Positions 42,351 through 59,400 of a DNA stretch of 64,000 nt are shown here, piece after piece. Both the position numbers and the translations under genes were made by a program. How positions within the stretch are numbered: the first letter of the stretch is position 1; every line of letters begins with the position of its first letter. The DNA lies in assembly GCF_963853765.1 (NCBI RefSeq), contig NC_088854.1, positions 56,420,001-56,484,000 on the forward strand, written 5' to 3'. This DNA comes from Magallana gigas (Eukaryota). The notes beneath the pieces are model-generated. The model saw only the letters and a list, made by a program, of their open reading frames with translations. It did not search any database and was not told the DNA's origin.

Positions 42351-45023
42351 CTCTTCTCAGCAGTCCGTTATACTTTTGTCTATAGTAAATACTCAGAGCA
42401 GCACCACTATTGTCAATGGAGCCACCGATAAATCAAGCTCAGTGAGGCCGCCTGGGTGGTCCATTGCCTTGTTTTGTGGATCTATAAGTCCCTAACCAGG
42501 CCCGTCCTTACCCTACATATGTCTACATGTTCAGGGTCCGATAGGGCCCCATTCGAGCTGCTGCTGTAGATGAAGGAAGCAGATCCCTCAGGTGAGTGGG
42601 CGTGGCCTGCTGCAGTCTCCTCCGTCACATCGTCACGGACTCAGGTGTTTTGGTTGTAGAATGTGATGATGCACCTGTGTAATGAATGTCATACCTTCTG
42701 TGTGATTCAAATGTTGTTATTCTCCAGAGCACGGAAAACTGGGCCCTCCGCCCCCTTTAGGGCGAGTTAAACATTCTTTACGGTTTTGAAAAAACTTAAA
42801 TACTAGAAAACACACACAAGAAAAATAAAGAGAGAGCCCGAGGAAAGCAACGTGAAGACGTATTACGTAAAAATAAAAGCATCAGATATAGAACAGATTA
42901 ATAAAAGCATCAGATATAGAACAGATTAATAAACATTTAAATCAAATACGTAAAAGTCGACTCTGATATACACACATTCATTACGAGATGTAAGAAGTTT
43001 ATTCAAGTGATAAATTAAGCATCCAGAGGGCTAAAGCAAAGGTTGTACCGAGAAATGCATTCACTCTGTGTAGGGGGATCCTTTGTAGAAACAGCAAAGC
43101 TATGCTACAATAATCAAATACCAGAGACCCGAAGACAGCAATCCTTATAGCATGATAATCACTAGCTACTATAATAAAATTAGTTAACTATATTTAGTAT
43201 ATTTATCGCTTCTACAGTGTACAAAATCATTTATTCAAGGAAATTTCACATTAAAAGGAATCACATCTTTCACACCTCTAAATGCTAGTTTGATTCAATA
43301 TCAACTTTACAAACTGAACTATTCGTTGATTTTGGAGCGGAATTTGATTCTATAAATGCTACTTTATTGAGACACTTAATATGTCGCGCTCGTTTAAAAT
43401 TTTAGAATGTAATGACTGTGGTTTTTGGTTTTGATGCTTTGGTAAAAAAAATTAGATTTTTTTTTATCATTGTATTTCAATGTAAAATTGTATATCCTTA
43501 TTAAGGGTCCTCTCGCTTTAACCATTTGGACCAAAGATTTCATATATGAAAAGAACTTCTTTAGCGACAAATACATTATACAAATTAGCGTTTCATGCCA
43601 TTCAGAAATATTTTTAGAATGCATTAAAGTCAAAAAATTTGATGGGATTCAGTTTTTGGCATTGTATATGTATTAGCCAGATTGTTGATCTATTTGTTGA
43701 TATATCATCACTACGAATACATGTATTAGTAACTTCTCACCAACTCCTTTTTGAAATCACTGTTAAATTTATTAAATATACCAATTTTTTAGGACGAAAC
43801 TCCACTATACAATATCTACTAAGATTTTTAAAAATCTAACTGTTTTATATTGTCTACAGTCTTAGAAAAGAAAACCTGAAACGTTCTGATATACACAATG
43901 TACACGGAGCTTTCTTTGATATACCCGATGAATCAAATACACTGATGAAGGAGTTTCACATAATACATGTATGACCATCCTGGTTTCCGGGAGCGATGCT
44001 TTGAACAAATATGAATTTATCTGCATGATAGATGTACATGTACATGAAAGCTTTGAAAATACTATCTGGCTTTGATTGAAAATTTTAGACACTTATCATA
44101 TCTTCGTTGTCCTTATTATTTCTTCTCTTCTCTTACTTTTTTCTTTCTCTCAACCAATTTCATGCTTCGCCTTACTGGGCAGACAAAATATAGAACAAAT
44201 GAGGAAACGGATTAGTGTAAGTTTCACAACTTGTTTCAGAATCCTGTTGTAATACATTTCAACATGTACAGCTTTGAAAATATTATCTGGTTGGATGGAA
44301 AATTTTAAACACCCATCAGATCCTCTTTATTCTTATTATCGTTCCTTCCCTTCTTTATTACACTGAGTTAAATTAATAAGTTACGATGTAGTAGGGACCC
44401 GCCTTAACTCGAAGAATCTATTTACCATCAAATTTCGGTTTACAGGCGAGCAAAACCCCTATGTATTGAAAGGACCGTGTCTTATACAATAATATCCCCA
44501 CATACACTAAAAATCATGTTATGGTTTATCTATGATATATATGCTAAGATATTGGTCAATTTTTAGTGTTTTTTTTTTAATTCTAATTTTATTGACATGA
44601 TACAGTAACATGGGTTTTATTTGACTGGTTTCAAATAAAACATAGCATTTGATCATCATGCCTTACTCCCACTCTTAGCTACCCCTACCCCTCATTAAGA
44701 TCTTTATTCTCCAGTGTATAAAGGTCATTGATATAGTTTGAATCCGTGTAGATCTACTCAGGAAAGACAGATAGATGCTATGTCTGATAGAACGTAGAGC
44801 ACTGATCTGTATTGTATATTGTCATGAAATCTGCATCTTTGGGTAGGAATCCTTAGTCGAAATTGGCTTCCTTTAGCGCTTATATCAGCGGAATCTGTTT
44901 TACTGGCCGATTTTTACATGGTATCATAAAATATTGAGGATATTGATCAGTTAATGGCTAGGATTAAAGTCTTAATCTTTCCCGAATTTGCCAACCAGCC
45001 AAATAAATTCTATGAATGAATAA

Positions 45024-45026
<3 letters not shown>

Positions 45027-45083
<57 letters not shown>
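45027..45083. repeat. (GA)n microsatellite
   Basis: Directly visible. Confidence 0.97.
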
Positions 45084-45086
<3 letters not shown>

Positions 45087-47010
45087 TTTGATTGATGGTC
45101 AGAAACCAACTTCATACATATTAAGATTTCAGTTAAATTATATGAAAATTGCTTATTATTGATCTATTACTACTTGTTAATAATTTAATCCAAAATTGCA
45201 TTGTGAAAAATGCAATAAATAAAATTAAATCAAACATTCAAATTCTGCGAAAGACTACATTGTAGGAACAAACTCAGGCCGAGTGTTTAAGAATAGTTGA
45301 TAAGAATTCTCGATCAAAAAAAATGTTAAGATGCTGAAAGTCTGAAATATTACGTAAATGAAATCAACTCACTGATTATCTAGCCAATCAAACCTAAAAT
45401 GTTGATTTGCGGCTGTACATAGCGTTATGCAGCCATGCAAAATTGCCTGTTTTATAAAAGTCGTTATCGATTTCATTTCTCGGCATTTGACTTTTACTCT
45501 AGCATTCATTATACAATAGGTACACATTCAATGAATTATTCAGCAAGCTTAACTAAGATGAACCTAAGACCTATGCTTCTACAAGAAATGATACCCTATA
45601 TTTCCTGTTATTACACATTTATATCGGTAATGCGTCTTGAATATTCTGTGGGCTTGACCTGAAATGACCAGTAGCTCTTTGTCCCGTGCTTTTGTCAGCT
45701 GCAGAAAGTTTACATTCTGTCTGTCTGATTCCACAATTAAAACGCCTGTCTATCTGTCTGTTTGATACAGGAATATCAATTTCCATTGTAAATCAAAAAA
45801 AAAATTCAAAATATTTTTTTTTAAATGTGTCTTTCCAATATAATTGGGGATGCTTTTTTGAGATACGTATTAAAGTTTAGATCAAATATTTTGTCATTTT
45901 TACATGATTAAATATCTATATTGTAGACCTTTAGAAAAATTGATATTAGTTTCCTGGAATGTTTTGATATATTTGATAAATTAATATAATTTATCTACCA
46001 AATACACATAATTAAATCTCATGTATTTTGCTATTCAGATAAGCTATTCTCAAAATCAACAAACAGTCCAATTTAAAATGATGATTTAAAATATTCGTCA
46101 CAATACGAACAAGTGTCTGTGTCAATTTAAAAGACACCACCACTTTTTGTCAGATCGATATGTTTTGTCTGTGAGGGCGGTAGAGCAGAGAGCTAACGGA
46201 ATGCACTACTACGGGGTTCCCCGGCCGATCACTCTCTCGTAATCCAGCGACATTCACCGGGACCAATACAACGGTGCAGTTTAATTCATTCATAAAGGGA
46301 CTGCCACGGTTGACTCATTCCTGTTTACGCAGAGCGTACGAAAATATGACTTGGACGAATTAATTTCAATCTGGCATATCAAAGGACATGTTGTGAAGCT
46401 GGGAGAGATAGGCCGCGGGCTGGGGAGTATCTACAGGTAAGTAGCCATGATTAACATCTGATCAATGTTCTGGAAGCTCCCTACTGTCATTTCTCTTCGT
46501 AAAACGTCTGCCTGTCCGGACCGCGATACAGAAATGCCGACATAGAGGTTTGCTATGTTTATTCATAGTGGGCGTTGCCAGAGACGCGGATTACTTCCAT
46601 ATATAGAAATGGCCGTACTCCAGATAATTGACGGTAATAAATTTTTACACCAAGTGTGTAAATTTGGACATTTGTTTATACTATCAATATCTACATGTTT
46701 TTGGACAGCCAAGTTTAGCCACGTGACTCCTGAAGCCAATCCTGGAACGCTTGATAAATTACTCCAGCAGTCCTGACATAATATATAGAAGAGCTGCAGG
46801 TAGAATCTGGTATCATTTGAAACTGTGTCTGGAAAGTTAAGGAGTCAGCGCTAGCTGGGAGGCTTATTACTGTGTTAGGTATATAAGATACGTTGCCCTC
46901 TCCAGTCGGTCTTTTTAATCTGTGCAACCAACCTTGCTGCATCCTATAGTAAGGAAGGCCTGCTTTCACTTTTGCCTTTTGTTTCACTTTGTAGGAAATA
47001 GTTCATCGAC

Positions 47011-50000
47011 ATGTCTCAGACGAGGGAAACGGTCACTGAGAAGAGGACAGTCATCAAGTCCTCTTCGGGGTCCTCTGGTGGTTTTGATAATAAACCTTCA
47101 ATGGATCACATGGACGTCAACTTTAGGTCCAGCATCACCCCGCGCCGGAGCAACGTCATCCAGCGTAGCTCCACCGGTCCAGGGTTCCGCCAGAGTATGG
47201 GGGGTAGTAGCAGTGGGGGAACCTCGTATGTCAGGACGGTGGAGTACGGCTATGGGTCCAAAATGGACTCTGGTTTGGGACCAGGGGGATACGAGAAGGT
47301 GTCCTCAACCGGAGTGTCCACGGTGAAAAATAGCCGAGAAAGGGAAAAGAAAGACATGCAGGAACTGAACGAGAGATTCGCAAACTACATTGAGAAGGTC
47401 CGGTTCTTGGAGGCCCAGAACCGTAAGTTAGCATCGGAACTGGAAACCCTGAGGGATAAATGGGGCCAGGAAACTAGTGCTGTGAAACAAATGTATGAGT
47501 CGGAATTAGCAGAGGCCCGGAAACTGATAGACGACCTGACCCGGGAAAAGACAAACCTGGAAATCAAGAACCAGAGTCTGCAAGAGCAGATGCAGGACAT
47601 GCAAAGACAGTAAGTATATAAGTATAGACCTGGTAAATCAAGTAGAGCCATCTCAACCCCGTCAGAGGCCGGCGGGGGTCAACACTCTCATATCTTGTTG
47701 TTTGCACTATATTTCAAAACCATAAATCACTTTTGGGGTATGTAATTGAAATCAGCTGACGAATTCGTTTGTAGTGCTGTTTCTTGGAGTGTTTGACAGA
47801 TACCTGTCTCCATTAATGCATTTATATCATGCTTTCCTAAATGTATCTGTCAAATTTTATTAGCGAGAAAATTTTATGAGAATGTTAAATTTTGATCAAT
47901 TTTCATGAAGATCTAACATTTGCTGTTCATAGTTAATTACGAGTAGTGTAGTTTGATGACTGAAAGTAATGGGAGACCTGAAAGCGAAAGTGTAGTGTAT
48001 GTCAACTAAATCTGAAGTAGTTCCTACAGCGAGGTTTCTTTCTTATGTTGCACAACAATACAAAGTAAATACCAGTTTCTATTCATCCGCTTACCAAGCC
48101 CCCGATCTACCGTAGGTCTGCATTATTCTTAACGATCTACCTGTGTCTAAATGACCAATAAATCAAATCCTTTGGGGGACCGGAGTTAGGAGGGGGCGTG
48201 GGGCACCTGTTTTTACCTGGCGACCCAGAAATCGCTGTCTTTAAAAAATAAAATAAATAGGACAACAGTTTGATCTGATCCGAAACTTTCTGTATGATTA
48301 GAATTAAACAAACACGTTTAAAATGTAAATGAACCCCGACCCCGCATGTATGCTTGAAGAATTTGTATTGCTGTCAAACCGGTTATTTTGACGGTGAGTT
48401 AACATTACAGACTCGTTATAGAAAACGAGACGGAAAAACGAAATACACAGAGAGGGGATAAGCTAAAAGTAACAAAACATCCTACATGAATTTTGTCCAC
48501 CGTTTAACCCTTTTCCCGTGGGGGACAGTTTCTTATGTAGTTATAAATGGGAGAGATCCTCAGCTATCATTGATCAAGGCGGACCCGGTACCGCGGTGTG
48601 AACTCAGATGTTCAACAGAGGTTAAGGGAAGGGCCTTGATCCAACTACTTCAAAGTCCATATATATGTACGAATAATTCAGGTGTTACTTGATAATCCCC
48701 GTACATCGTCACAGTCTGTTCACAACTCTTGCATGTTTAACACACTCAGTTTACAAGTAAATCCTGTCAAGTTTTCTTTGGTTCTCTATAATTGCACAAG
48801 CTTTATTGTTATATTCTGGGGCGATTTAACATTTCAAAGCTCGGCTTCGTGTGTCACTGTAGGTAGGAATAGTAAATAACAGATTCTTATTTCACTTTTA
48901 AAGTGTATAGAATGTTGACTTGGCCTTGGGGGTTAAAAAAGCGATTCAAATCGGATATTTCAATGAACATTGATTTAGAAGTATTTATGCAAAGCGTGTT
49001 ATATAAACAATAACTAAATCCAGGATTCTTCAAGCGAAACTTTAGAGTAAATAGTGAAACATTAACGTTAAAGTTAAAGTTATGATAGGGTAGTTTTTCA
49101 AAGAGCTTTAAGGAATTTTTGTAATTCTAATGTTCTAAGAGTGTTTACTATTATGTAATGAAAAACCTTTTCACTAAACACAAAAAGCAAAACGCTTTGA
49201 AAAGGGAAAATGTATTAAATTATAATAATTTAAAATGAAAAAAAATAGTTTGGGTTTTCCCATAGACTGATTTTATAATCTGCATTGTTATGCCTCAGTA
49301 AATTTGTGAAAAATCGCACAAAGTTAAAAAAAGCGTGAATAATTTCTGGATTTGTCAGACTCCCTTAGATAGCATCTATCCCGTTAGAGAACAGCAACGA
49401 TCGATGCCCAGAGCTACCGATCCGTGCGGGCAGGAATCCGAGGTGTTCCGAAACAGCACCTGTCTGCGATAAAATCTAGATAACGATGACAATGAGATTG
49501 TCAGCATTAGCATTAAATCTTGGCTTGAGGGTATCAATGACCTCTTCATTACCTATATAGTACTTAACTACTTACAATGTTAATTTATATCGCATATATA
49601 GTAAAGCCATAAGTCACCTTTACATCCGCTGCATCACAAAAACTATCAATATGCTATGTTCGAATGATTATTCGTGAAATATTTAACAAGATAACAAAAT
49701 GATATAGATATGGTTTCTTTTGTCTCGCAGACTGGATGATGCCAAGAAATACCGCAACCAAGACAGAGAAACCATTGGCAGGCTGAACCAGCAGGTATCT
49801 GACCTCGAGGCGGAAGTGAACCTTCTCCGCCGAACCGTGGACTCCTTGGAGACGGACAGAAGCCGTGACCGTGAAAGGATCAAGAACTTGGAGGCCGAGG
49901 TCGACAGACTCAGACTGGTGAGTAATACAGAATTCGAAAAAAGGGGGAGGGGGTTATCGCTGAAGCTGGTTAAGGCCACCTGTTAAAATGGCGAATATTG

Positions 50001-53000
50001 TCAAAGATCAGTGCTTCCATGCTTATGTCAACCCTTGATTATAGTGAAAGGTCAAAGGGCACCCTGTAAAATTATGAAAATCGTCAAAGGTTATAGCGTA
50101 CCACATCAAACGAATATGACTTAGGGGGAAATCTAAACTTATGGGAGAAAAGACAGAAAAATAGGGATAGTATTTGTCCTTGATTAGCTGAGTATCATAG
50201 CGCCATTGGTACATTGATGCACTAGACTGGAGTCCACATTCCCCACATCAACATCAATATTCATATTCAATGAGGACTAATATTGCTGTCTAATGACCAT
50301 TTCCATTTAATTTCGATTAGGCTAATTACTATCACCAGAAGTGAAATACCCTAAAGTAAAGTATTTGTCTGGGTCTTATGCTTGGCATTGCATCGACGAT
50401 ACTCTCCAAACATTGGAAATACTGGCTGGAGGATGTTCTCTGTGTAATTTGTAGATATGTTTTGACTTAATGTATTATTTATTAACATTTCACCTCGATG
50501 TCCATCTCTGGCAATTGTTTAACGATGCTGGAATAATCAGTTTGGCAATTCCCCACCCAGACTTATCGAACCGGGAGCCCGTGCCAAAATGGCTAAATAA
50601 GCATTATATAGGAGAGCCTTCGCTCATCCAGACACTTTAACATGTAGACTATTATTGATGATGAACTTCAAAGCATTTTAATAGATACCGTAGATTTGGC
50701 AACTGAAGTATGAGTATAAGCGAAAACTGGTATATCACCAAAAAATATTACAAAAAAAATTTGATGTATCATGCCAAAATGGATAGGGCAGTTATCCGAT
50801 TCAAAACGTTTTATTTTACACTTCGTGCTGTATAGGTATCTGTTGATTGCAGTTTATTACATGTTTGAGCTTCGTTAGTTTCTAAACATTTCAGTGATGA
50901 TTTGCTTGCACAGCATTTTCCGATTTATCAATTATTCTGAACAGCACAAATTCGCGTCAAGGAAATGAAGCAGCGACAGCATCATAATCATCCATCAGAT
51001 ATTCTGTAGTTGGTTTTCAGTGCGTTTTTGTATTGTAAAGTCGTTCACCAAAGTATTTGTGCTTGTGATCGAATCCCTCGATCGAAGCTCGAGCCGTTAT
51101 TATGAAGCCCAAATACATGCAGCCTTTTGTTTCATAGAAATGGAAACTTGATCAGTATAAGGCGATGTCCTTTCATGCTCCACATAAGTCGCATGGGTCA
51201 AAAGGTCAAGTCTATTATCGCCGATATGTGAAGAAAATTTAAGAACGGTTATTGATTCAAAATAAGACCTTGGTTATGGCTTAACTACAAACTTTATGGC
51301 AAAGGCTTTGCAGGCTGTATCATCTGTTTATATTTTATGTAAAACCCCTGTTAATGGAACCAAATATAGGAGGTTTATTTCACTTAACCAGTCGGGAATC
51401 AAAGTACAGTCTTATAAAATTCTTATTAGGCGATCCATTTCGACATTAAATAAGTTTAATTGCAATCCCAGAGCATAAAACATGTCTACCTTAACTGGAA
51501 CTCTGTGAAGCCTCGTCAAGCTTAAATGGGTACTTTTATTAGTCTAGTCTAGTCTATAGGTAATTAGACTTTTAAACCATTTTGATTTTTCCAGGACTTG
51601 AACAACGAAACCCTTGCCCACCTCGACGCCGAAAACAGAAGACAGACCCTGGAGGAAGAGATTGAATTCCTGAAGAAGGTCCATGAACAGGTAAGTAGAA
51701 CAAAATGCTTAAATATGTAATACATATGTATAAGATCTACCTATTGAATATGTACATGTTTTTGTTATCATGGTTTTTGTCCATGTTTTTGTTTTAAATA
51801 AAAACAATGCAACATTATGAAAATGAAAACGCAAAATTAGGCTAAGCACAATGCATAATATGGTTTTAATGATAATGATATACCATCTTACATTAGACCG
51901 TTTATTAGTCGAGCTGTCAACTGGGAAATAAAAAGAAATCTTGCTTTACTTTTAGTTTACAGTGTAGGTGTGGGAAATACGATCCTAAAGCTACTAGTAT
52001 TATATTCAGCGGAATGTGGCTGCTTATCACCATTTATAGCACATTAATGCAGGCATAAAAGTGTCGATAAGCACATTAGCATATCCTATTATCACAATGA
52101 CGAATAACCATTATGATTGTCCTTACAGGAACTGAAGGAGTTAGCTGCCCTTGCCTACCGGGACACCACCGAAGAGAATCGGGAATTCTGGAAGTCGGAA
52201 CTTTCTCAAGCCATCCGTGACATCCAGAAGGAGTATGACAACAAGGTGGACCAGATCCGAGGGGACATGGAGGGCTTCTACAACCTCAAGGTACGTCACA
52301 ACCTCCGGCTGAATGAATATTGTCTGTTCTTTGTGAATTTGGGCATGCATGATTGATGTTTTGTTTTTCTCAGATCCAAGAATTCCGTACTGGGGCTACT
52401 AAACAGAACATGGAAGTTACCCACATAAAGGAGGAGAACAAGAAACTCATGAAACAGATCTCCGACCAAAAGGGAAGACTTGCCGATTTAGAAGCTAGAG
52501 TAAGTAACAGATAATGACTCGAATCAAACACTAGCTCCACTGAAATTTATAAAATAAAATTGTCAAAGAAAGCAACTTTTCTTAACTTTGGGTATTTTCT
52601 CATTAGAACGCCTTATTAGAGAAACAATATCAAGATCTCCTCCGTGAATATGAAACAATTGAATCTGAGCACACAGTTGAGACAACAAGACTTAAGGAAG
52701 AGATCACCAGCCTAAGAGCCGAGATGGAAGGCATTCTACAAGAACTGCAGACCATCATGGACCACAAATTATCCCTGGAACTCGAGATTGCCGCTTACAG
52801 AAAACTACTGGAATCCGAAGAAAGCCGGTATGCTATATTGAGTATTAAAATTTAGTAAATTCATGATCTTAATAGTACTGGTTAAGTCCTTATCACTATG
52901 TTATCAGTAATACATTATGTTGACGATGTGGAGCAAGACCCTAACGTTTGTTATTTGTTTCTTTCTAATGCTGTCGTGCTGGTGGTGGTATGTGGCTACT

Positions 53001-56000
53001 TTACTTTTATCAAACAACAATTAGATATGTTCGTGGTATAGTAGCAAGCGTAGCTGCTCTACGCCATCCATCATGGCGAACCCAAAGAATGCAACCAAAC
53101 AATTTCACTGAACCAGACGAGGAGCCCCAGGATTTCCCTGAACCTAAACCTGTCCCTGAACCCAAAATGGATATGGATGACGACAGAGCGGAACGAGACA
53201 TAACCCCTGATGAGGACAACAAACCACTAGAGGAGGAAACCCCTGCTGTGGAAATCCCGCTGAATGAAGAGTCTGAACAACCAGAAACAACTGAAGAGGT
53301 GGTGGAAAATACAGCCGACGATGGAAATCCGGAAGATGACAACGCCCAGAAAGAAGAACCAGTGGAAGGTGGAGACGATGCAGACACAGCTGGTGAAAAT
53401 GAGGTGGAACAAGAAGGAGCTACAGAGATTACAGAGGCACAAAAAGAAGAAAGCAAAGAAGCAGATATTCAAAGTGAGGACAAAGACGAAACCAAAGAAA
53501 CGGGTGATAAACAGAAAAACACAGATGAGAAAAAAGAAGCTGACCAGAAAGAAGACAACGTGGATGATAAGAACGCCGAAGGAAATGATGAGAAAGAAAC
53601 TCCAGAGAGAGAGGTTGAGGACTCTGGTGTCGCTAATGATAAAGAGGGAAATGATAATCAGGATGATGGAGAAAAGGGTGAAGAGAAACCTGTAGAAGAC
53701 TCAAATGAGAAAGACATTCAGAAGTATAAAACTGACACTGAAGAGATTGATAGTAAAGTAAGAGATGAGGAAGCAGAGGACACACAAAAAGAATCTAAAG
53801 ACCAAAGCCAGGACCAGGACGACGAGGTTAAAGAAGACGTAAAAGAAGATAAGACTAATGATGATGCTGATGTTAAAACTGACGATAAGTTAGACGATAA
53901 GACTGATGATAAGGTTGAAGACAAGACAGATGATGAAAAGAAAGATTCGCAAGACATTGAGCAAGAGAAAGAAACCCCTACAGTGAATGGGGATGCAAAA
54001 GAACCTGGGGATGACGACGAAGGTTCCATGCACTATATTGGATACTTTTTGTTTTCCACAATCACCACTATGCATGCTTTAAGCAGGATGTGCTGTCACC
54101 TTTAATACTAACTTTTATCATTTATTTTTTTCCTTTTAAACCATTCATGTGCTACTCATGATTCCATATTTGTCATACTAGGTATAACCCAATTTTGAGG
54201 CTTCGTACCGATGTAAATGACTCCATCGAAGTTCATGATAATGAGGTTAACCCGAGGGGAGGTAACTCGTGCACATCGCCACATAATATCATATCTACCC
54301 AGATGCATGCTTTGTCCTCCTCTGTGCAGCTTTTGATATTGTGTATTCGCTATTCATTATATTTTTAGTTTCAGACCTCACTGGGTTTAGCGACCACTCA
54401 ATGTTGTAGATTCTTTACATGTTGTCTTCACCGTTTTGCTGTATTTTTGTCGTTGTTATATCAACCAGCTTTTTATTCAATGCACACAGGGTGGGACTTA
54501 GAAACTTTGTTGAACAGACCACAACTTCCCAGACTCGGGGTGGCGCGCACTTGTCCGAAATGATCCAAGGCTATGAGCAGAAGGGTGGTGCGTATCCCAG
54601 ACTACAGAGACCATTAACACTCTTACTAATACGGGTGCGGCAGTAGAAATCAAATACATTCACTGAATGTCATTTTCATTTTAGTTTCTTTATAGGTTTG
54701 GGAATGGTGTTAATTGATAAAGATGTCTCATACTATCACAATTATTCTTCGAAGTACCATCGTAACTAAATTGGAGATAGGTGACAGGTGGAGCATGCTA
54801 CATATATAATTAAGTTCTCTATTCTGCAATATTTTAAAATTATTTGTAACCAGTTGCCTGAAATCTTTACACATAAATATTCAATTGCATCGCTATTTGT
54901 ATCATACCGGCATTTAGTCATATATTTCTAAATAAACCTTATAAATGTATATATGTATAAACTTTTAAAAGAAAGTGTATCAACGTATATTATGTACATT
55001 GCATGCATCTTCAAATTTAAAATCGATTTAAAAACATAATGAATCGGATTTTTTCATAATACATCTATTTCAATCCTGTATAATGCCAATCTCTTAGAAT
55101 CGCACCAAACCATGAAGATGATGAGAGGGGAGGTCTCAGCTAAGACAACCTTCCAGAGAACAGCTAACGGACCACTGACCATCTCCGAAGTCTGTCCAGA
55201 GGGAAAATACATCAGCATAGAGAACACCACCAGTGGAGCCAACCGTAGGGTAAGGGCAACAGTAAAAAACAAGATGCTTCAACAAAAATGTCTGTGATCA
55301 ATTTCTCTGATTTATAACTATCACTTATTATTTCCAACAGGAAGTTAACATGGATGGATGGAGGCTGAAGAGAACGGTTGATGGCAAGAGAGATTACATC
55401 TACATGTTTAGAAACTTTACTCTTAAACCCGGCAAAGTTGTCAAGGTAAGGGAAAATTAACCAATTAATAATATAAGTATATTCTGTTATTGGTCATTTT
55501 AGATCTAAATTTAGACAACCAGTCATTAATTAAGGTGGTATGAGACACCTCCATGTTATGACGTGTTATTTATCGAAATAAACAATAAATCAAGTATAAT
55601 TATATAAATAGTTTCTTTCCCAAAATCGTCATCTAACAGCTAAGTGCAGTGGGTTAGAGAGTTCACTACGGATCTGTAAGTCATGAGTTCGAATCCCGGG
55701 GAGACTTTTGAAATGTTTAAATTTTCAATTTTTTTTTAAACCTTAACGTACTTTTGGTTAAATATTGTAAAATTTGAAAATTCTAAACCGGTAAAAGTAG
55801 TTTGACTTAAAATATACTTTGATCCACATTAATAACGACAGGTATCCCATACCACCTAAGCATTGGTTTTAAACCTTTGTATTTTGCACGTTGTCCTGTT
55901 ATTGGTTATTGTATTTAAATGACCAATCATCATACTTGTGTATTACTCCACTTGTCCTGACGCCCTGTGTCTGTTTATTGTAGATCTACTCCCGTGGCTC

Positions 56001-56473
56001 GGCTGCCGACGCCAGTGTTAACGACTTGGTGTACAGGGACGACGACTCTTGGGGCGTGGGATCCCAGGTCACCACTGTCCTTCTGAACGAGAGCAGCGAG
56101 GTAAGCCCAGCTAATTAAACCACCGTACTTACTGAACAAATTCACTCCGTTCTAAAAAAAAGTTAAGCTTTACCTTTAGACAAGGAACTCCGGAAATGTT
56201 TAGGAAAATTTACAAACTTTATTACTGAAATATTTCGATTTGTTCTCTAAATAATATGGTTTATTAATACGCATGTACTAAGTTTTTAAGGTTGGTATGG
56301 TAGGTAAATTATTGACCATCCAGCTTCCTATTTAACATGTTTCTTTAATGTTTTTTTTTATTTTTCCTGACCTTTTTAAATAGGTTAAAGGAGTAAGTGC
56401 AAGATAATGAATTAAGCCGTTATGTATTTTTCAGGAGAAGGCAACACACACACAGAAGACTCTTTACAACTAA
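47011..56473 (+). CDS. Molluscan neurofilament-type cytoplasmic intermediate filament protein with lamin tail domain (squid NF60/NF70-like)
   Basis: Exons 47011-47609, 49731-49917, 51595-51690, 52129-52290, 52374-52499, 52607-52827, 54490-54587, 55098-55249, 55341-55445, 55984-56100, 56435-56473; phases consistent. Coil 1A LNERFANYIEKVRFLEAQN, rod end LELEIAAYRKLLESEESR, LTD (GKYISIEN, MDGWRLKR, DSWGVG). Ends QKTLYN* with no CaaX, so not a lamin. ELAALAYRDTT.ENREFW and EFRTGATKQNMEV match squid neurofilament as recalled. Confidence 0.92.
53025..54022 (+). CDS. Candidate alternative exon encoding a ~330-aa Asp/Glu/Lys-rich neurofilament tail
   Basis: Stop-free frame of >1 kb inside the intron after the rod-end exon. 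Phase-2 acceptors at 53025 (TTAG) and 53088; phase-1 donor candidate at 54022/54023, or read-through to the stop at 54105. Confidence 0.7.
55534..55856. mobile_element. Kolobok-like TTAA-flanked non-autonomous transposon carrying a tRNA-like segment
   Basis: TTAA|GGTGGTATGAGACACCT ... AGGTATCCCATACCACC|TAAG imperfect TIRs; internal 55638-55702 has an A-box-like CAGTGGGTTAGAG and B-box GTTCGAATCC. Confidence 0.7.
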
Positions 56474-59400
56474 ATGAATTACAGAACGTTAGAGAACAAC
56501 TACTGCAATGCTGCAACAGGCTTACTGCTTTGTGAATTAAGAATGTGGACAATGTTTTTTTATCTTCCATACTACATGTACTTAATTATATGATAATATG
56601 TCGATGCTTTTTGTGTTTTTATATCAGTGGTTGTGATTGTAGTGTATTTTTAGTTTGTCTTCCATGGACAAAAAACCTCATTGTATATGCCAGCCCTTTT
56701 AAAGATAATTTTCTATAGTTTTTTTTGAGACCAGTGACTGCCATGTTTATTTATGATGTTAAATTGTTACTCAAACTTGATGTTTACTTTGTGTATGCTG
56801 ACTGTGTCTTTCCAATGTATTGGTTTCCTAGCGTTTTGTAATTAGCTAACGCTTCTCCTCTTTCGAACTTTGGAGGGACATGCGCAGTTAAAGACTTGTA
56901 TGACCTTCTCCGCTACTGTTTATATTAAACATGATCTTTGTCATCTCTTTGTGCCACTGCTTGTGAGATAAATGTAAAATGATAGAACACAAATATACTT
57001 AGGTCTTGCTGCCTGTTACTTGCCGACATCTTTAGTAATAAATTTCTAAGACAAATGAATTGTGTCATGTTTTTGTATGTACAAGGTTTATGTTAAGGTT
57101 GATCTCTTATTATTAAAAAAAAAGAATCATACAACGGAATTATTTAAGAAAATGAAGAATTCTTTCAATTTCATTTAATTGTTTATTTATTACTTCCCAA
57201 GTCCATCTCGACAGAAATTGGAGGAACTGAAAACATCTACTACCAATATATTCGAAATTTCAAAACCCAAGGAGACGCTTAGATTTAAACTTATCCAAGG
57301 CTTTATGTGTAAATGGGTGCTTTAGAATGATTTAATTGGACGTTTTCTGTAAAATTTGAAATTACTTGAGTTTGTAGTTTTTGATAAAAAAATCTGTTCA
57401 ATACTATACATGACCTATCAATATTAATATGCTATTTGGTTAACAATACTTGAAAACGGGTTAGTCTACTGGTCTATAGTATTTAAAAGTCTTTTCCGGA
57501 AGGGTGATTTAAAATCTAATTTTTCGATATTTATGTCCTCAACAGTTAGTTTGAGCATATGTAATTTTTGACCAACATTTGAATGTTAAAAACAGATTAT
57601 AAGCAATATATAAAAATATGAATTTAGGAACAGTATAGTCTTCATTTTGTTTATAAATAATGCACTGAAAATTTCGTTTACTTGATAATATTTATTTCAG
57701 TGCCGAGTACGATAAACGGTTTTATTTAGAGGGCCGATGGTCGCGGCCATTTTAGACTACCATATTTGCGTCCTTAAAAAGAAGAGCTCTATATAAAGAT
57801 GTAGAAAAATATTAAAATATTGAAGCTAAAATATATGAATGTTTTCTATACTTGATAATAGTATACAAGAATAGCTAAAAAATCATGTATAAAAATTTAA
57901 GGTAGATCTGATCGCTTCTTTGTTAACCAGTCAACCTTCTTAGCTTAACAAAAACAAGGCCTAGAGTTTTGTTTACAAAAGATAGAATCCGAACTCGTTA
58001 TCTTAAATGTTACTGACCAATGAAATTTAAATTCTGGTCAAGTTAAACATTCAAGATATTAACAAAATGGAATTTGATCCACTCTGCTCCTCTACAAAGG
58101 AACAGAGAGGCAGAGTGGATCGAAAGCCCTTGGCTAGCGAAGATGGGGCTAACAATCTTTCGTGTTTAAAGGTCATAAATTAACTATGGATGTCTGTATT
58201 ACAATCAAATGTTACATGTACTCAAAAGCTATACAATTACCGATACTTCGCTATTATATATCCTGGAGCTACAGTTCCATCCAAACAAAAAACTGTCTAT
58301 TTGTTGCGCACAAAAGGTTGCGCACGGTTTTGGTCTTATTAAACTAATATAGGAATATATTCTGTAAATATTTCTATGTTAAAAAAAATTTCTTAGATAA
58401 TTTACTACTGATTCACCATTTTACTTGCCTCAAAATTTTCTGAAAATTTTGAGTACAAATTGTGTCTAAATCTCTTTCAGGACTGTCTTATGGTAAGAAT
58501 ACCCTTAAAAAAAAATTTTGTGGTACAATAAAAGCAGTATTCATTATAAAGATTGAAGATTGTTGTAAAAAATTCAGTGAAGTTTATCATATATTATTAT
58601 TGCCAAAGCAATAAGATTTCTTGTAAGTTGAACCCCGCGCACTCGTATTAAAAAAACCCTGTACAAATATTAAATATTATTATTAGCTTCCCGTATCCAG
58701 GAAACTCTGCGTTGTTTTCTGTTCTATTCTGTTCTATTTTTCGTTTTAATTTATAAATCGGAAACAAGTAGAAAAAATATAAATTATGTACCGCCTAAAA
58801 ATTTTGCCTACAGAAAAAAAATATTATTTAATCGCTCGCCATCTCGTACCTTTTTTTTTCATTAGATGTCCGACGAACAAGAAATTATATTGGTGTGGCC
58901 TATTGTTATAATGCAAATATAGTGTCACATGACTTATTCCACTTATCTGAAATATAAAATTATAAGCACAACTGCTCAAATGCAAGAACAACCTTTATTT
59001 TCATGTAAAGAACATTCAAAAATAAAACTGGCCACTACAAAACAAAGAAACACAACGCAAATACAATCAAGATCTACAAACAATCCGATAAATTATAGTG
59101 ACATTGTAACTGCAGTATTTCTATTGAATTGACATATTTATACGCTTACATATTACTATCTGTCTATTTCGTGTTTTGATATATTAATGTACAAACAGTT
59201 CATCCTCTATAACGTGAGTCAACAGAATCTACATTGCAATTTTCGTTTTCTAATGTCCATAGTGTAAACTTTTAGAATGTATTATGTAATAAATCTTATT
59301 TATAATTTAATTATACATGTACTTTGCAAATAATACACACACAGTTACGTTAACGATAATGCCCATACTCGTTCACCGAATAATCCCTATCTTTACACGA

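Follow-up and report, generated by a model that had tools for sequence, protein, structure and literature searches.

The 64,000-nt stretch of the Magallana (Crassostrea) gigas genome analysed here (NC_088854.1, positions 56,420,001 to 56,484,000; G000:C2:56420001-56484000), in the following called the window, carries one plus-strand intermediate-filament (IF) gene between about 47.0 and 57.3 kb. A first reading of the bare sequence, here called the original prediction, had proposed that this neurofilament-like gene contains a long acidic exon, used in place of a canonical 98-nt exon between the rod and the C-terminal LTD, and that the resulting isoform is composed of rod, acidic spacer and LTD. 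Here, we describe the gene, the alternative exons at this site, and RNA, database and comparative data on the acidic exon. Genome-wide statements refer to the 564-Mb, 29-contig assembly.

Results

Exons were placed by combining open frames, splice sites and RNA joints. Exon 1 (47011-47609), an open frame followed by a GT donor, contains the start codon, the head domain, coil 1A and the start of coil 1B, and matches the N-terminus of the database protein K1PWQ2/P0006 identically. Exon 2 (49731-49917), placed by its splice sites, continues coil 1B in a lamin-like long version, and its end was read in the loose end of RNA contigs at 51594. It is followed by exon 3 (51595-51690; joint 51690/52129 in four runs), exon 4 (52129-52290; joints in four runs), exon 5 (52374-52499; RNA joints) and exon 6 (52607-52827), which codes for the rod end (…YRKLLESEES-R) and closes in phase 2 at a single donor (52827; GTATGC) common to all alternative exons described below. 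These exons also share one acceptor, that of LTD exon 1 (55098-55249), which opens in phase 1. LTD exon 2 (55341-55445) and LTD exon 3 (55984-56100) were placed by RNA joints, and the last coding exon (56435-56473; …EKATHTQKTLYN, stop) by the joint 56100/56435 and its translation. The 3' untranslated region extends to at least 56990-57351, with RNA contigs reaching 57351. The phases and coordinates on which the original prediction was built (52827 in phase 2, 54490-54587, 55098 in phase 1, a donor after 54022) were all correct.

In the encoded protein, Pfam Filament (PF00038) matched residues 112-464 (E 5.5e-56), while Pfam LTD (PF00932) matched with E 9.5e-13 in P0010, a 627-aa protein from cDNA contigs with the same C-terminal exons as the 933-aa form described below. 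The rod match covers 353 residues, compared with 313 positions in the profile, a length which points to a rod with a lamin-like long coil 1B carrying about 42 extra residues. The C-terminus (…QKTLYN) lacks the CaaX box that marks nuclear lamins. Since both Filament and LTD are matched and the CaaX box is absent, the gene product is, judged by these sequence features, a protostome-type cytoplasmic IF of the NF70/NF60 type and not a lamin. The closest experimentally characterised protein among the matches is NF70 of Helix (Q25017, 60% identity), and orthologues are named 60/70 kDa neurofilament-like. The name ‘neurofilament’ derives from automatic annotation and this 60% identity and is to be taken as an analogy only. 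Relatives of the oyster protein also occur in Mytilus shell-matrix proteomes alongside muscle proteins, which makes a strictly neuronal role doubtful. Elsewhere in the genome the rod-end exon has two other matches only, G000:C2:3148095-3148310 (46%) and G000:C6:35685562-35685777 (42%), which presumably belong to a further cytoplasmic IF gene and/or a lamin gene. With no closer match than these, the NF70-type gene of the window appears to be single-copy.

Three alternative exons lie between the rod end and the LTD. Exon A (53025-54022), the acidic exon of 998 nt with 332 full codons, is documented by an RNA joint, by K1PWQ2 and by the cDNA contig L002; it runs from the acceptor TTAG/A at 53025 to the donor AAG/GTTCCA after 54022, and leads from phase 2 to phase 1. 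Exon B (54182-54261; 80 nt, YNPILRLRTDVNDSIEVHDNEVNPRG) is defined by the joints 52827/54182 and 54261/55098, and exon C (54490-54587), the canonical 98-nt linker (VGLRNFVEQ…), which equally leads from phase 2 to phase 1, by the joints 52827/54490 and 54587/55098. The proposed mutually exclusive pair thus stands as far as exclusivity is concerned, but the 80-nt exon had been missed and the number of exons is three. Two acceptors, 53025 and 53088, had been considered for the acidic exon: the former is supported by an RNA joint and by the residues coded by 53025-53087, which are conserved as protein in other oysters, while the latter is used by none of the joints listed. The acidic frame stays open for 378 codons (52969-54102), for which we estimate a chance probability of about 7e-12; over 4.8 kb of other introns of the gene, the open frames reach 79 codons at most.

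The lengths of the three exons (998, 80 and 98 nt) are each 2 mod 3, so that inclusion of one exon keeps the frame and inclusion of none or two gives an early stop. Computed translations yielded a protein of 933 aa (106.9 kDa, isoelectric point 4.55) with exon A alone, of 627 aa with exon B alone and of 633 aa with exon C alone, whereas omission of all three leads to a stop at residue 479 and joining of A and B to a stop at residue 802. The three exons are therefore mutually exclusive through the reading frame, and the expectation that either the acidic or the 98-nt exon links rod and LTD in frame while both together shift it was borne out. Nonsense-mediated decay would presumably remove transcripts with aberrant combinations. 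The 90%-identity cluster of the exon B protein P0010, to which the 633-aa form would probably also belong, has 75 member sequences.

A BLASTP comparison among the three exon peptides gave no match even at E 100, and they are not tandem duplicates. Likewise, a search for docking/selector RNA pairing found no inverted repeat conserved between the window and Saccostrea. Steric exclusion was considered and rejected for the oyster, as the introns between the alternative exons (159 and 228 nt) are too long. In Mytilus californianus, the second and third alternative exons are separated by an intron of about 70 nt (L004, 19076-19146), compared with 228 nt in the oyster; steric hindrance could there add to the frame-based exclusivity.

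RNA was placed on positions 51500-57499 as two contig sets (X3 and X4) and as the raw reads of two stranded poly(A) runs (X22 and X23). Twenty public runs hold at least 83% of exon A's sampled words, two of which are on record as RNA. All constitutive junctions were present as GT..AG joints on the strand expected for plus-strand mRNA. From the common donor, the joint 52827/53025 into exon A was found in an X4 contig (depth 86) and in one X22 read with 69 nt on its shorter side, the joint 52827/54182 into exon B in an X3 contig and one X23 read, and the joint 52827/54490 into exon C in X3 and X4 contigs and one X22 read. The acceptor at 55098 is entered from 54261 and from 54587. For exon A, an X4 contig whose alignment starts at 55096 extends beyond it by 16 nt, which match 54005-54020 and occur nowhere else in the window; together with the shared AG, this overhang gives the junction 54022/55098. 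Both junctions by which the acidic isoform was to be recognised were thus seen, the second as this overhang. No joint between two alternative exons was found among the joints listed, in a small read sample. Contig depth amounted to 38-86 in exon A, 71-73 in exon C and 64 in exon B (X3), compared with 109-404 in upstream exons and 0-26 in most other intron bins, and in the sampled raw reads exon A reached roughly 5-25% of constitutive-exon depth.

Exon A is also highly polymorphic (53037-53761): the RNA contigs of two studies differ at 8-9 sites per 850-980 nt, and K1PWQ2 differs from the window at several exon A residues (e.g. QKYKTD vs QNDKTD), the rod being almost invariant.

K1PWQ2 (K1PWQ2_MAGGI, ‘60 kDa neurofilament protein’, 933 aa), whose model and name were both generated automatically, has exactly the structure of rod, 53025-54022 and LTD, and differs from the translation of the window by allelic substitutions only. 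A region-restricted search also recovered two 921-aa proteins from transcript contigs and a 902-aa protein of Saccostrea cucullata. One of the former (P0007) is encoded by a 3792-nt Logan contig (L002) with an uninterrupted open reading frame; since rod, acidic and LTD exons are contiguous in it, L002 is, on its sequence, the spliced mRNA of a related oyster. As a sequence, the long isoform is not new: UniProt has listed it since the genome of 2012, and long forms are predicted in Mytilus, Mya and Saccostrea. The literature searched contained no account of K1PWQ2 as one of three exclusive isoforms, nor of the acidic spacer. We found that a published larval and juvenile study combining proteomics with quantitative PCR lists K1PWQ2 as a ‘neuron-specific protein’ with higher levels in juveniles (PMC4527670); its primers map to 52701-52725 (forward) and 53028-53054 and thus flank the junction of exon 6 and exon A, so that the assay measures the acidic isoform only. 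The supplement of that study gives K1PWQ2 at about 4% coverage, without a peptide list.

An exhaustive profile search with exon A recovered the 908-aa M. gigas protein A0A8W8LET9 and little else. This model (P0001) combines the acidic with the 80-nt exon, and A0A8W8LG77 (P0005) combines the acidic with the 98-nt exon; both map to 53025-54587. Their junctions (…ALSRM/YNPIL and …DDDEAFYSMH/RVGL) differ from those in RNA, and both contain a frame-shifted internal stretch (…ATEITE DTKRRKQRSRYSK…), whereas RNA contigs show 0 gaps over 53024-54003. Because of these non-RNA junctions and the frame-shifted stretch absent from the RNA contigs, both are probably chimeric gene models. The suspicion that gene predictors would miss the acidic layout thus does not hold throughout, as K1PWQ2 contains it; the two newer models mis-join the exons.

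The spacer encoded by exon A has 332 residues, 126 of which are Asp or Glu (38%) and 44 Lys or Arg (13%), resulting in a net charge of -82 and an isoelectric point of 4.05. The fraction of charged residues is 0.51 and the net charge per residue -0.25; mean hydropathy is 0.29, compared with a disorder boundary of 0.50. It contains 11 Ser and four Thr-Pro, but neither Lys-Ser-Pro (KSP) nor Ser-Pro. The KTDD-like repeats, already remarked in the original prediction along with the Glu-, Asp- and Lys-rich composition, were recovered by a repeat search as six copies of a 12-nt period encoding (D/E)DK(T/L/V) tetrapeptides (53844-53946, plus strand). A Pfam search of the exon A peptide returned no domain. 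AlphaFold2, run on residues 430-933 with a six-sequence alignment, modelled a helical rod end continuing about 12 residues into exon A, then about 330 spacer residues without secondary structure at a predicted local distance difference test score (pLDDT) of about 34, and finally a nine-strand beta LTD at pLDDT 65-75. The spacer is thus predicted to be disordered.

Exon A is single-copy in the assembly at DNA and protein level, so the possibility that it belongs to a dispersed repeat did not hold. Saccostrea genomic DNA (L003) contains the three exons in the order of the window: exon A at 9293-10197 (43-49% protein identity to the window), the 80-nt exon at 10342-10421 (88%) and the 98-nt exon at 10636-10733 (78%). 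The acceptor context of exon A is the same in Saccostrea and the donor AAG/GTTCCA identical; in Mytilus the donor reads GTTACT. The dN/dS ratio of nonsynonymous to synonymous substitution rates for exon A is 0.22, both against a sister oyster and against Saccostrea (rod, 0.014-0.018; LTD tail, 0.07-0.10), and all gaps in two pairwise codon alignments with related oysters preserve the frame. In Mytilus californianus (L004) we found the order rod end, 1.66-kb acidic exon, 163-nt exon, VGMRN exon and LTD; the Mytilus ‘ILERIR’ exon matches the oyster 80-nt exon in position alone. In Mya arenaria (L005), the canonical exon is preceded by an acidic exon of 2.8 kb. The open frame looked for at the syntenic site of other bivalves was hence present in Saccostrea, Mytilus and Mya. 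Judged by these alignments, exon A is a conserved coding exon under purifying selection that recurs in three other bivalve genera.

The bulk of exon A cannot be aligned between orders, where three short motifs are kept. Oysters and Mytilus share ERDITPD (pairwise E 1e-4); (I/P/V)TVNG, close to the C-terminal end of exon A, is present in oysters, Mytilus and Mya; and EEPQGLP(D/E)PKPV is common to oyster exon A and the LTD-less tail of the Haliotis ‘NF60-like isoform X3’ (pairwise E 2e-5). An exhaustive HMMER search and two word-based searches with exon A matched oyster proteins only; outside oysters, the evidence for homology consequently comes from position, exon order and these three motifs. 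Predicted long isoforms of Mytilus californianus (1145 aa), Mytilus-like (1169/1320 aa), Mya arenaria (1495 aa) and Saccostrea cucullata (902 aa) resemble the oyster form in insertion point, exon order, Asp plus Glu content (26-38%), retention of the LTD and the ERDITPD and TVNG motifs; they differ from it in the size of the insert (308 to 923 residues) and in the bulk of its sequence, which is not alignable. Several of these long models are chimeric; P0022, for example, continues past the donor into the exon that follows. Over the entire linker, net charge ranges from -74 to -105 in the pteriomorph species (308-733 residues) and is -163 in Mya. The VGLR..VEQ motif of the 98-nt exon also occurs in Helix NF70, Mya, Mytilus and proteins taken as annelid IFs, and on this motif distribution exon C is the ancestral form.

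The gastropod orthologue likewise has two kinds of isoform, LTD-less ‘NF60-like’ ones of 531-545 aa and LTD-bearing ones of 594-667 aa (Haliotis P0101/P0102, Patella P0118), and the Haliotis NF60-like tails bear the EEPQGLPDPKPV motif of oyster exon A.

Downstream of exon A, alignment to Saccostrea delimits a conserved intronic block (54023-54115, plus strand) following the donor GTTCCA. Over about 90 nt past the donor, identity between M. gigas and Saccostrea is high, and 1- and 2-nt indels break the frame. As the nucleotides are conserved despite these indels, the block is indicated to be regulatory rather than coding. It contains TGCATG (54071-54076, plus strand; UGCAUG in RNA), a candidate Rbfox-type splicing enhancer at a conserved position: its distance from the exon A donor is 49 nt in the window, 48 nt in Saccostrea and, for Mytilus, 62 nt. 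Both oysters have a further conserved (U)GCAUG after exon B, which in the window (54304-54309, plus strand) lies 42 nt downstream of the exon B donor, and no GCAUG was found after the 98-nt exon. A Pfam Fox-1_C search of the genome for an Rbfox marker matched neither a candidate nor its controls.

Two further elements were noted around these exons. A (GA)n-type microsatellite (window about 45016-45090) lies about 2 kb upstream of the start of the IF gene and reads as an Arg-Glu run in one frame. Within the intron between LTD exons 2 and 3, RNA depth at positions 55500-55900 is very high for both strands, reaching about 2000 in X3, with many loose ends and internal rearranged joints, which together indicate an expressed dispersed repeat. 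A tRNA-like B-box (GAGTTCGAATCCCGG) in this region suggests an element similar to a short interspersed nuclear element or a miniature inverted-repeat transposable element; ARAGORN called no tRNA in 55450-55980.

Discussion

We consider it highly probable that the acidic exon is genuine, conserved and one of three mutually exclusive linker exons of a single-copy cytoplasmic IF gene. The proposed layout of rod, acidic spacer and LTD is supported by RNA junctions, by the cDNA of a sister oyster, by K1PWQ2 and by the conserved syntenic frame. These data show a real alternative isoform, in which the rod shared with the short isoforms is followed by a long polyanionic, predicted-disordered insert before the LTD.

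Alternatively, the acidic frame might mainly serve as a terminal or retained-intron exon, ending at the stop 54103-54105 and giving an 823-aa isoform without LTD, comparable to the NF60-type tails of gastropods. Such an arrangement would account for the two RNA contigs that cross the donor (X3 53275-54119 and X4 54005-54210) and for the weakness of the donor GTTCCA, and it has a parallel in the Haliotis ‘NF60-like isoform X3’, whose tail carries EEPQGLPDPKPV and no LTD. However, neither AATAAA nor ATTAAA occurs within 54023-54489, the read-through peptide is not conserved, with the Saccostrea indels starting right past the donor, and read-through depth in X4 is 18.7, compared with 85.8 in the exon. 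Moreover, X4, K1PWQ2 and two full-length cDNA contigs of the sister species all contain the spliced form. We thus regard this alternative, which the original prediction had named with an end at 54105, as unlikely and do not favour it over an internal exon A spliced to the LTD.

Still less probable is that the exons are ordinary cassettes which can be combined, as in A0A8W8LET9 and A0A8W8LG77. These two predicted proteins exist, but two exons joined at the real splice sites shift the frame into the stop at residue 802, the models remain in frame only through other junctions and a frame-shifted stretch unsupported by RNA contigs, and the joints listed include none between two alternative exons. 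A chance open frame, transposon remnant or assembly artefact within an intron, to which the low-complexity, repeat-like composition might point, can be practically dismissed given the single copy, the estimated chance of such an open frame, the splicing in RNA and the purifying selection across three other bivalve genera.

Several observations weigh against our view of exon A as an exclusive, internally spliced exon with a disordered product under conserved splicing control. The junction 54022/55098 in M. gigas rests on one 16-nt overhang together with the database and sister-species evidence, and raw-read support is thin, with 1-2 junction reads per run in a 1% sample. X3 and X4 contain intronic contigs, so that depth alone is no proof of an exon. 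The joints listed are all but two, and absence of co-inclusion is therefore not strict. Because two contigs pass through the exon A donor, some transcripts are unspliced, or end, at this site. The PMC4527670 supplements give no exon A-specific peptides. A low pLDDT obtained from a six-sequence alignment is a weak sign of disorder. Finally, GCAUG density is not clearly above background (four in 2.27 kb), and only the positional conservation of the motif counts.

In the squid Doryteuthis pealeii, one gene reportedly gives rise to NF60, NF70 and NF220 by alternative RNA processing. Squid NF220 carries Lys-Ser-Pro repeats, and its long tail forms the C-terminus. The oyster gene resembles the squid gene in that a single molluscan IF gene yields isoforms which share a lamin-like rod and diverge just after it, one of them being much longer and highly charged, as is NF220. 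Unlike squid NF220, the oyster exon contains no KSP and encodes an internal spacer which is followed by the LTD. NF70 of Helix (Cornu) aspersum shares with the oyster protein the Filament and LTD domains and the VGLR…VEQ linker of the 98-nt exon; it is on record in the short linker form only, without an acidic insert.

The side-arms of vertebrate NF-M and NF-H are long, disordered, charged projections, expected to form a brush that sets filament spacing. The oyster spacer is likewise a charged, predicted-disordered projection at the rod end, and in vertebrates the subunit that bears such a projection co-assembles with shorter ones. Of the features of such side-arms, the oyster isoform has the long charged extension predicted to be disordered and lacks the KSP repeats. 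NF-M and NF-H are encoded by separate genes, whereas the oyster form arises from alternative exons, and their charge is largely due to KSP phosphorylation, whereas that of the oyster spacer is built in with 38% Asp plus Glu. Since the vertebrate subunits carry no LTD at the far end, the resemblance is, as far as the analogy reaches, convergent and not homologous.

The long isoform may co-polymerise with the 627- and 633-aa isoforms, whose rod it shares, and decorate the filament with a charged brush that would set spacing or interactions, as the NF-M and NF-H side-arms do. The polyanionic spacer of about 330 residues would then tether the folded LTD to the rod end and displace it from the filament surface. 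Rbfox proteins bind (U)GCAUG; where this motif follows a weak exon, it favours inclusion of the exon in neurons and muscle. Inclusion of exon A may hence be regulated by the conserved weak GTT donor and the downstream UGCAUG, an Rbfox-type motif. We propose that exon C would be the default and that A and B would depend on factors; control of this type would predict an enrichment of exon A in neurons and/or muscle.

Extending this proposal, we tentatively suggest, while leaving room for considerable doubt, that the three-way switch may be an ancient, at least bivalve-wide module under an Rbfox-type factor, perhaps homologous through EEPQGLPxPKPV to the alternative NF60/NF220 tails of gastropods and cephalopods. 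It would make a brush-bearing subunit in chosen cell types, in which the LTD sits on a tether whose charge stays constant (about -80) and whose length is free.

What our analysis adds to the existing records is the third, 80-nt and apparently unannotated exon with a three-way exclusivity enforced by the frame, and the occurrence of the acidic exon across three bivalve orders with its conserved motifs, weak donor and UGCAUG. In addition, two UniProt models are flagged as chimeric, and a published quantitative PCR assay is shown to be specific for the acidic isoform. The weak donor, the UGCAUG and the frame-enforced exclusivity combine into a testable prediction of how exon choice is controlled. 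In the layout of rod, spacer and LTD, the Ig-like LTD would be moved tens of nanometres off the filament instead of being replaced, a natural experiment on the role of the LTD in cytoplasmic IFs. By exon choice, one bivalve IF gene would thus yield plain as well as side-arm subunits without extra genes. The ancient switch suggested above, if real, would achieve independently and through splicing what in vertebrates relies on separate NF-M and NF-H genes and phosphorylation.

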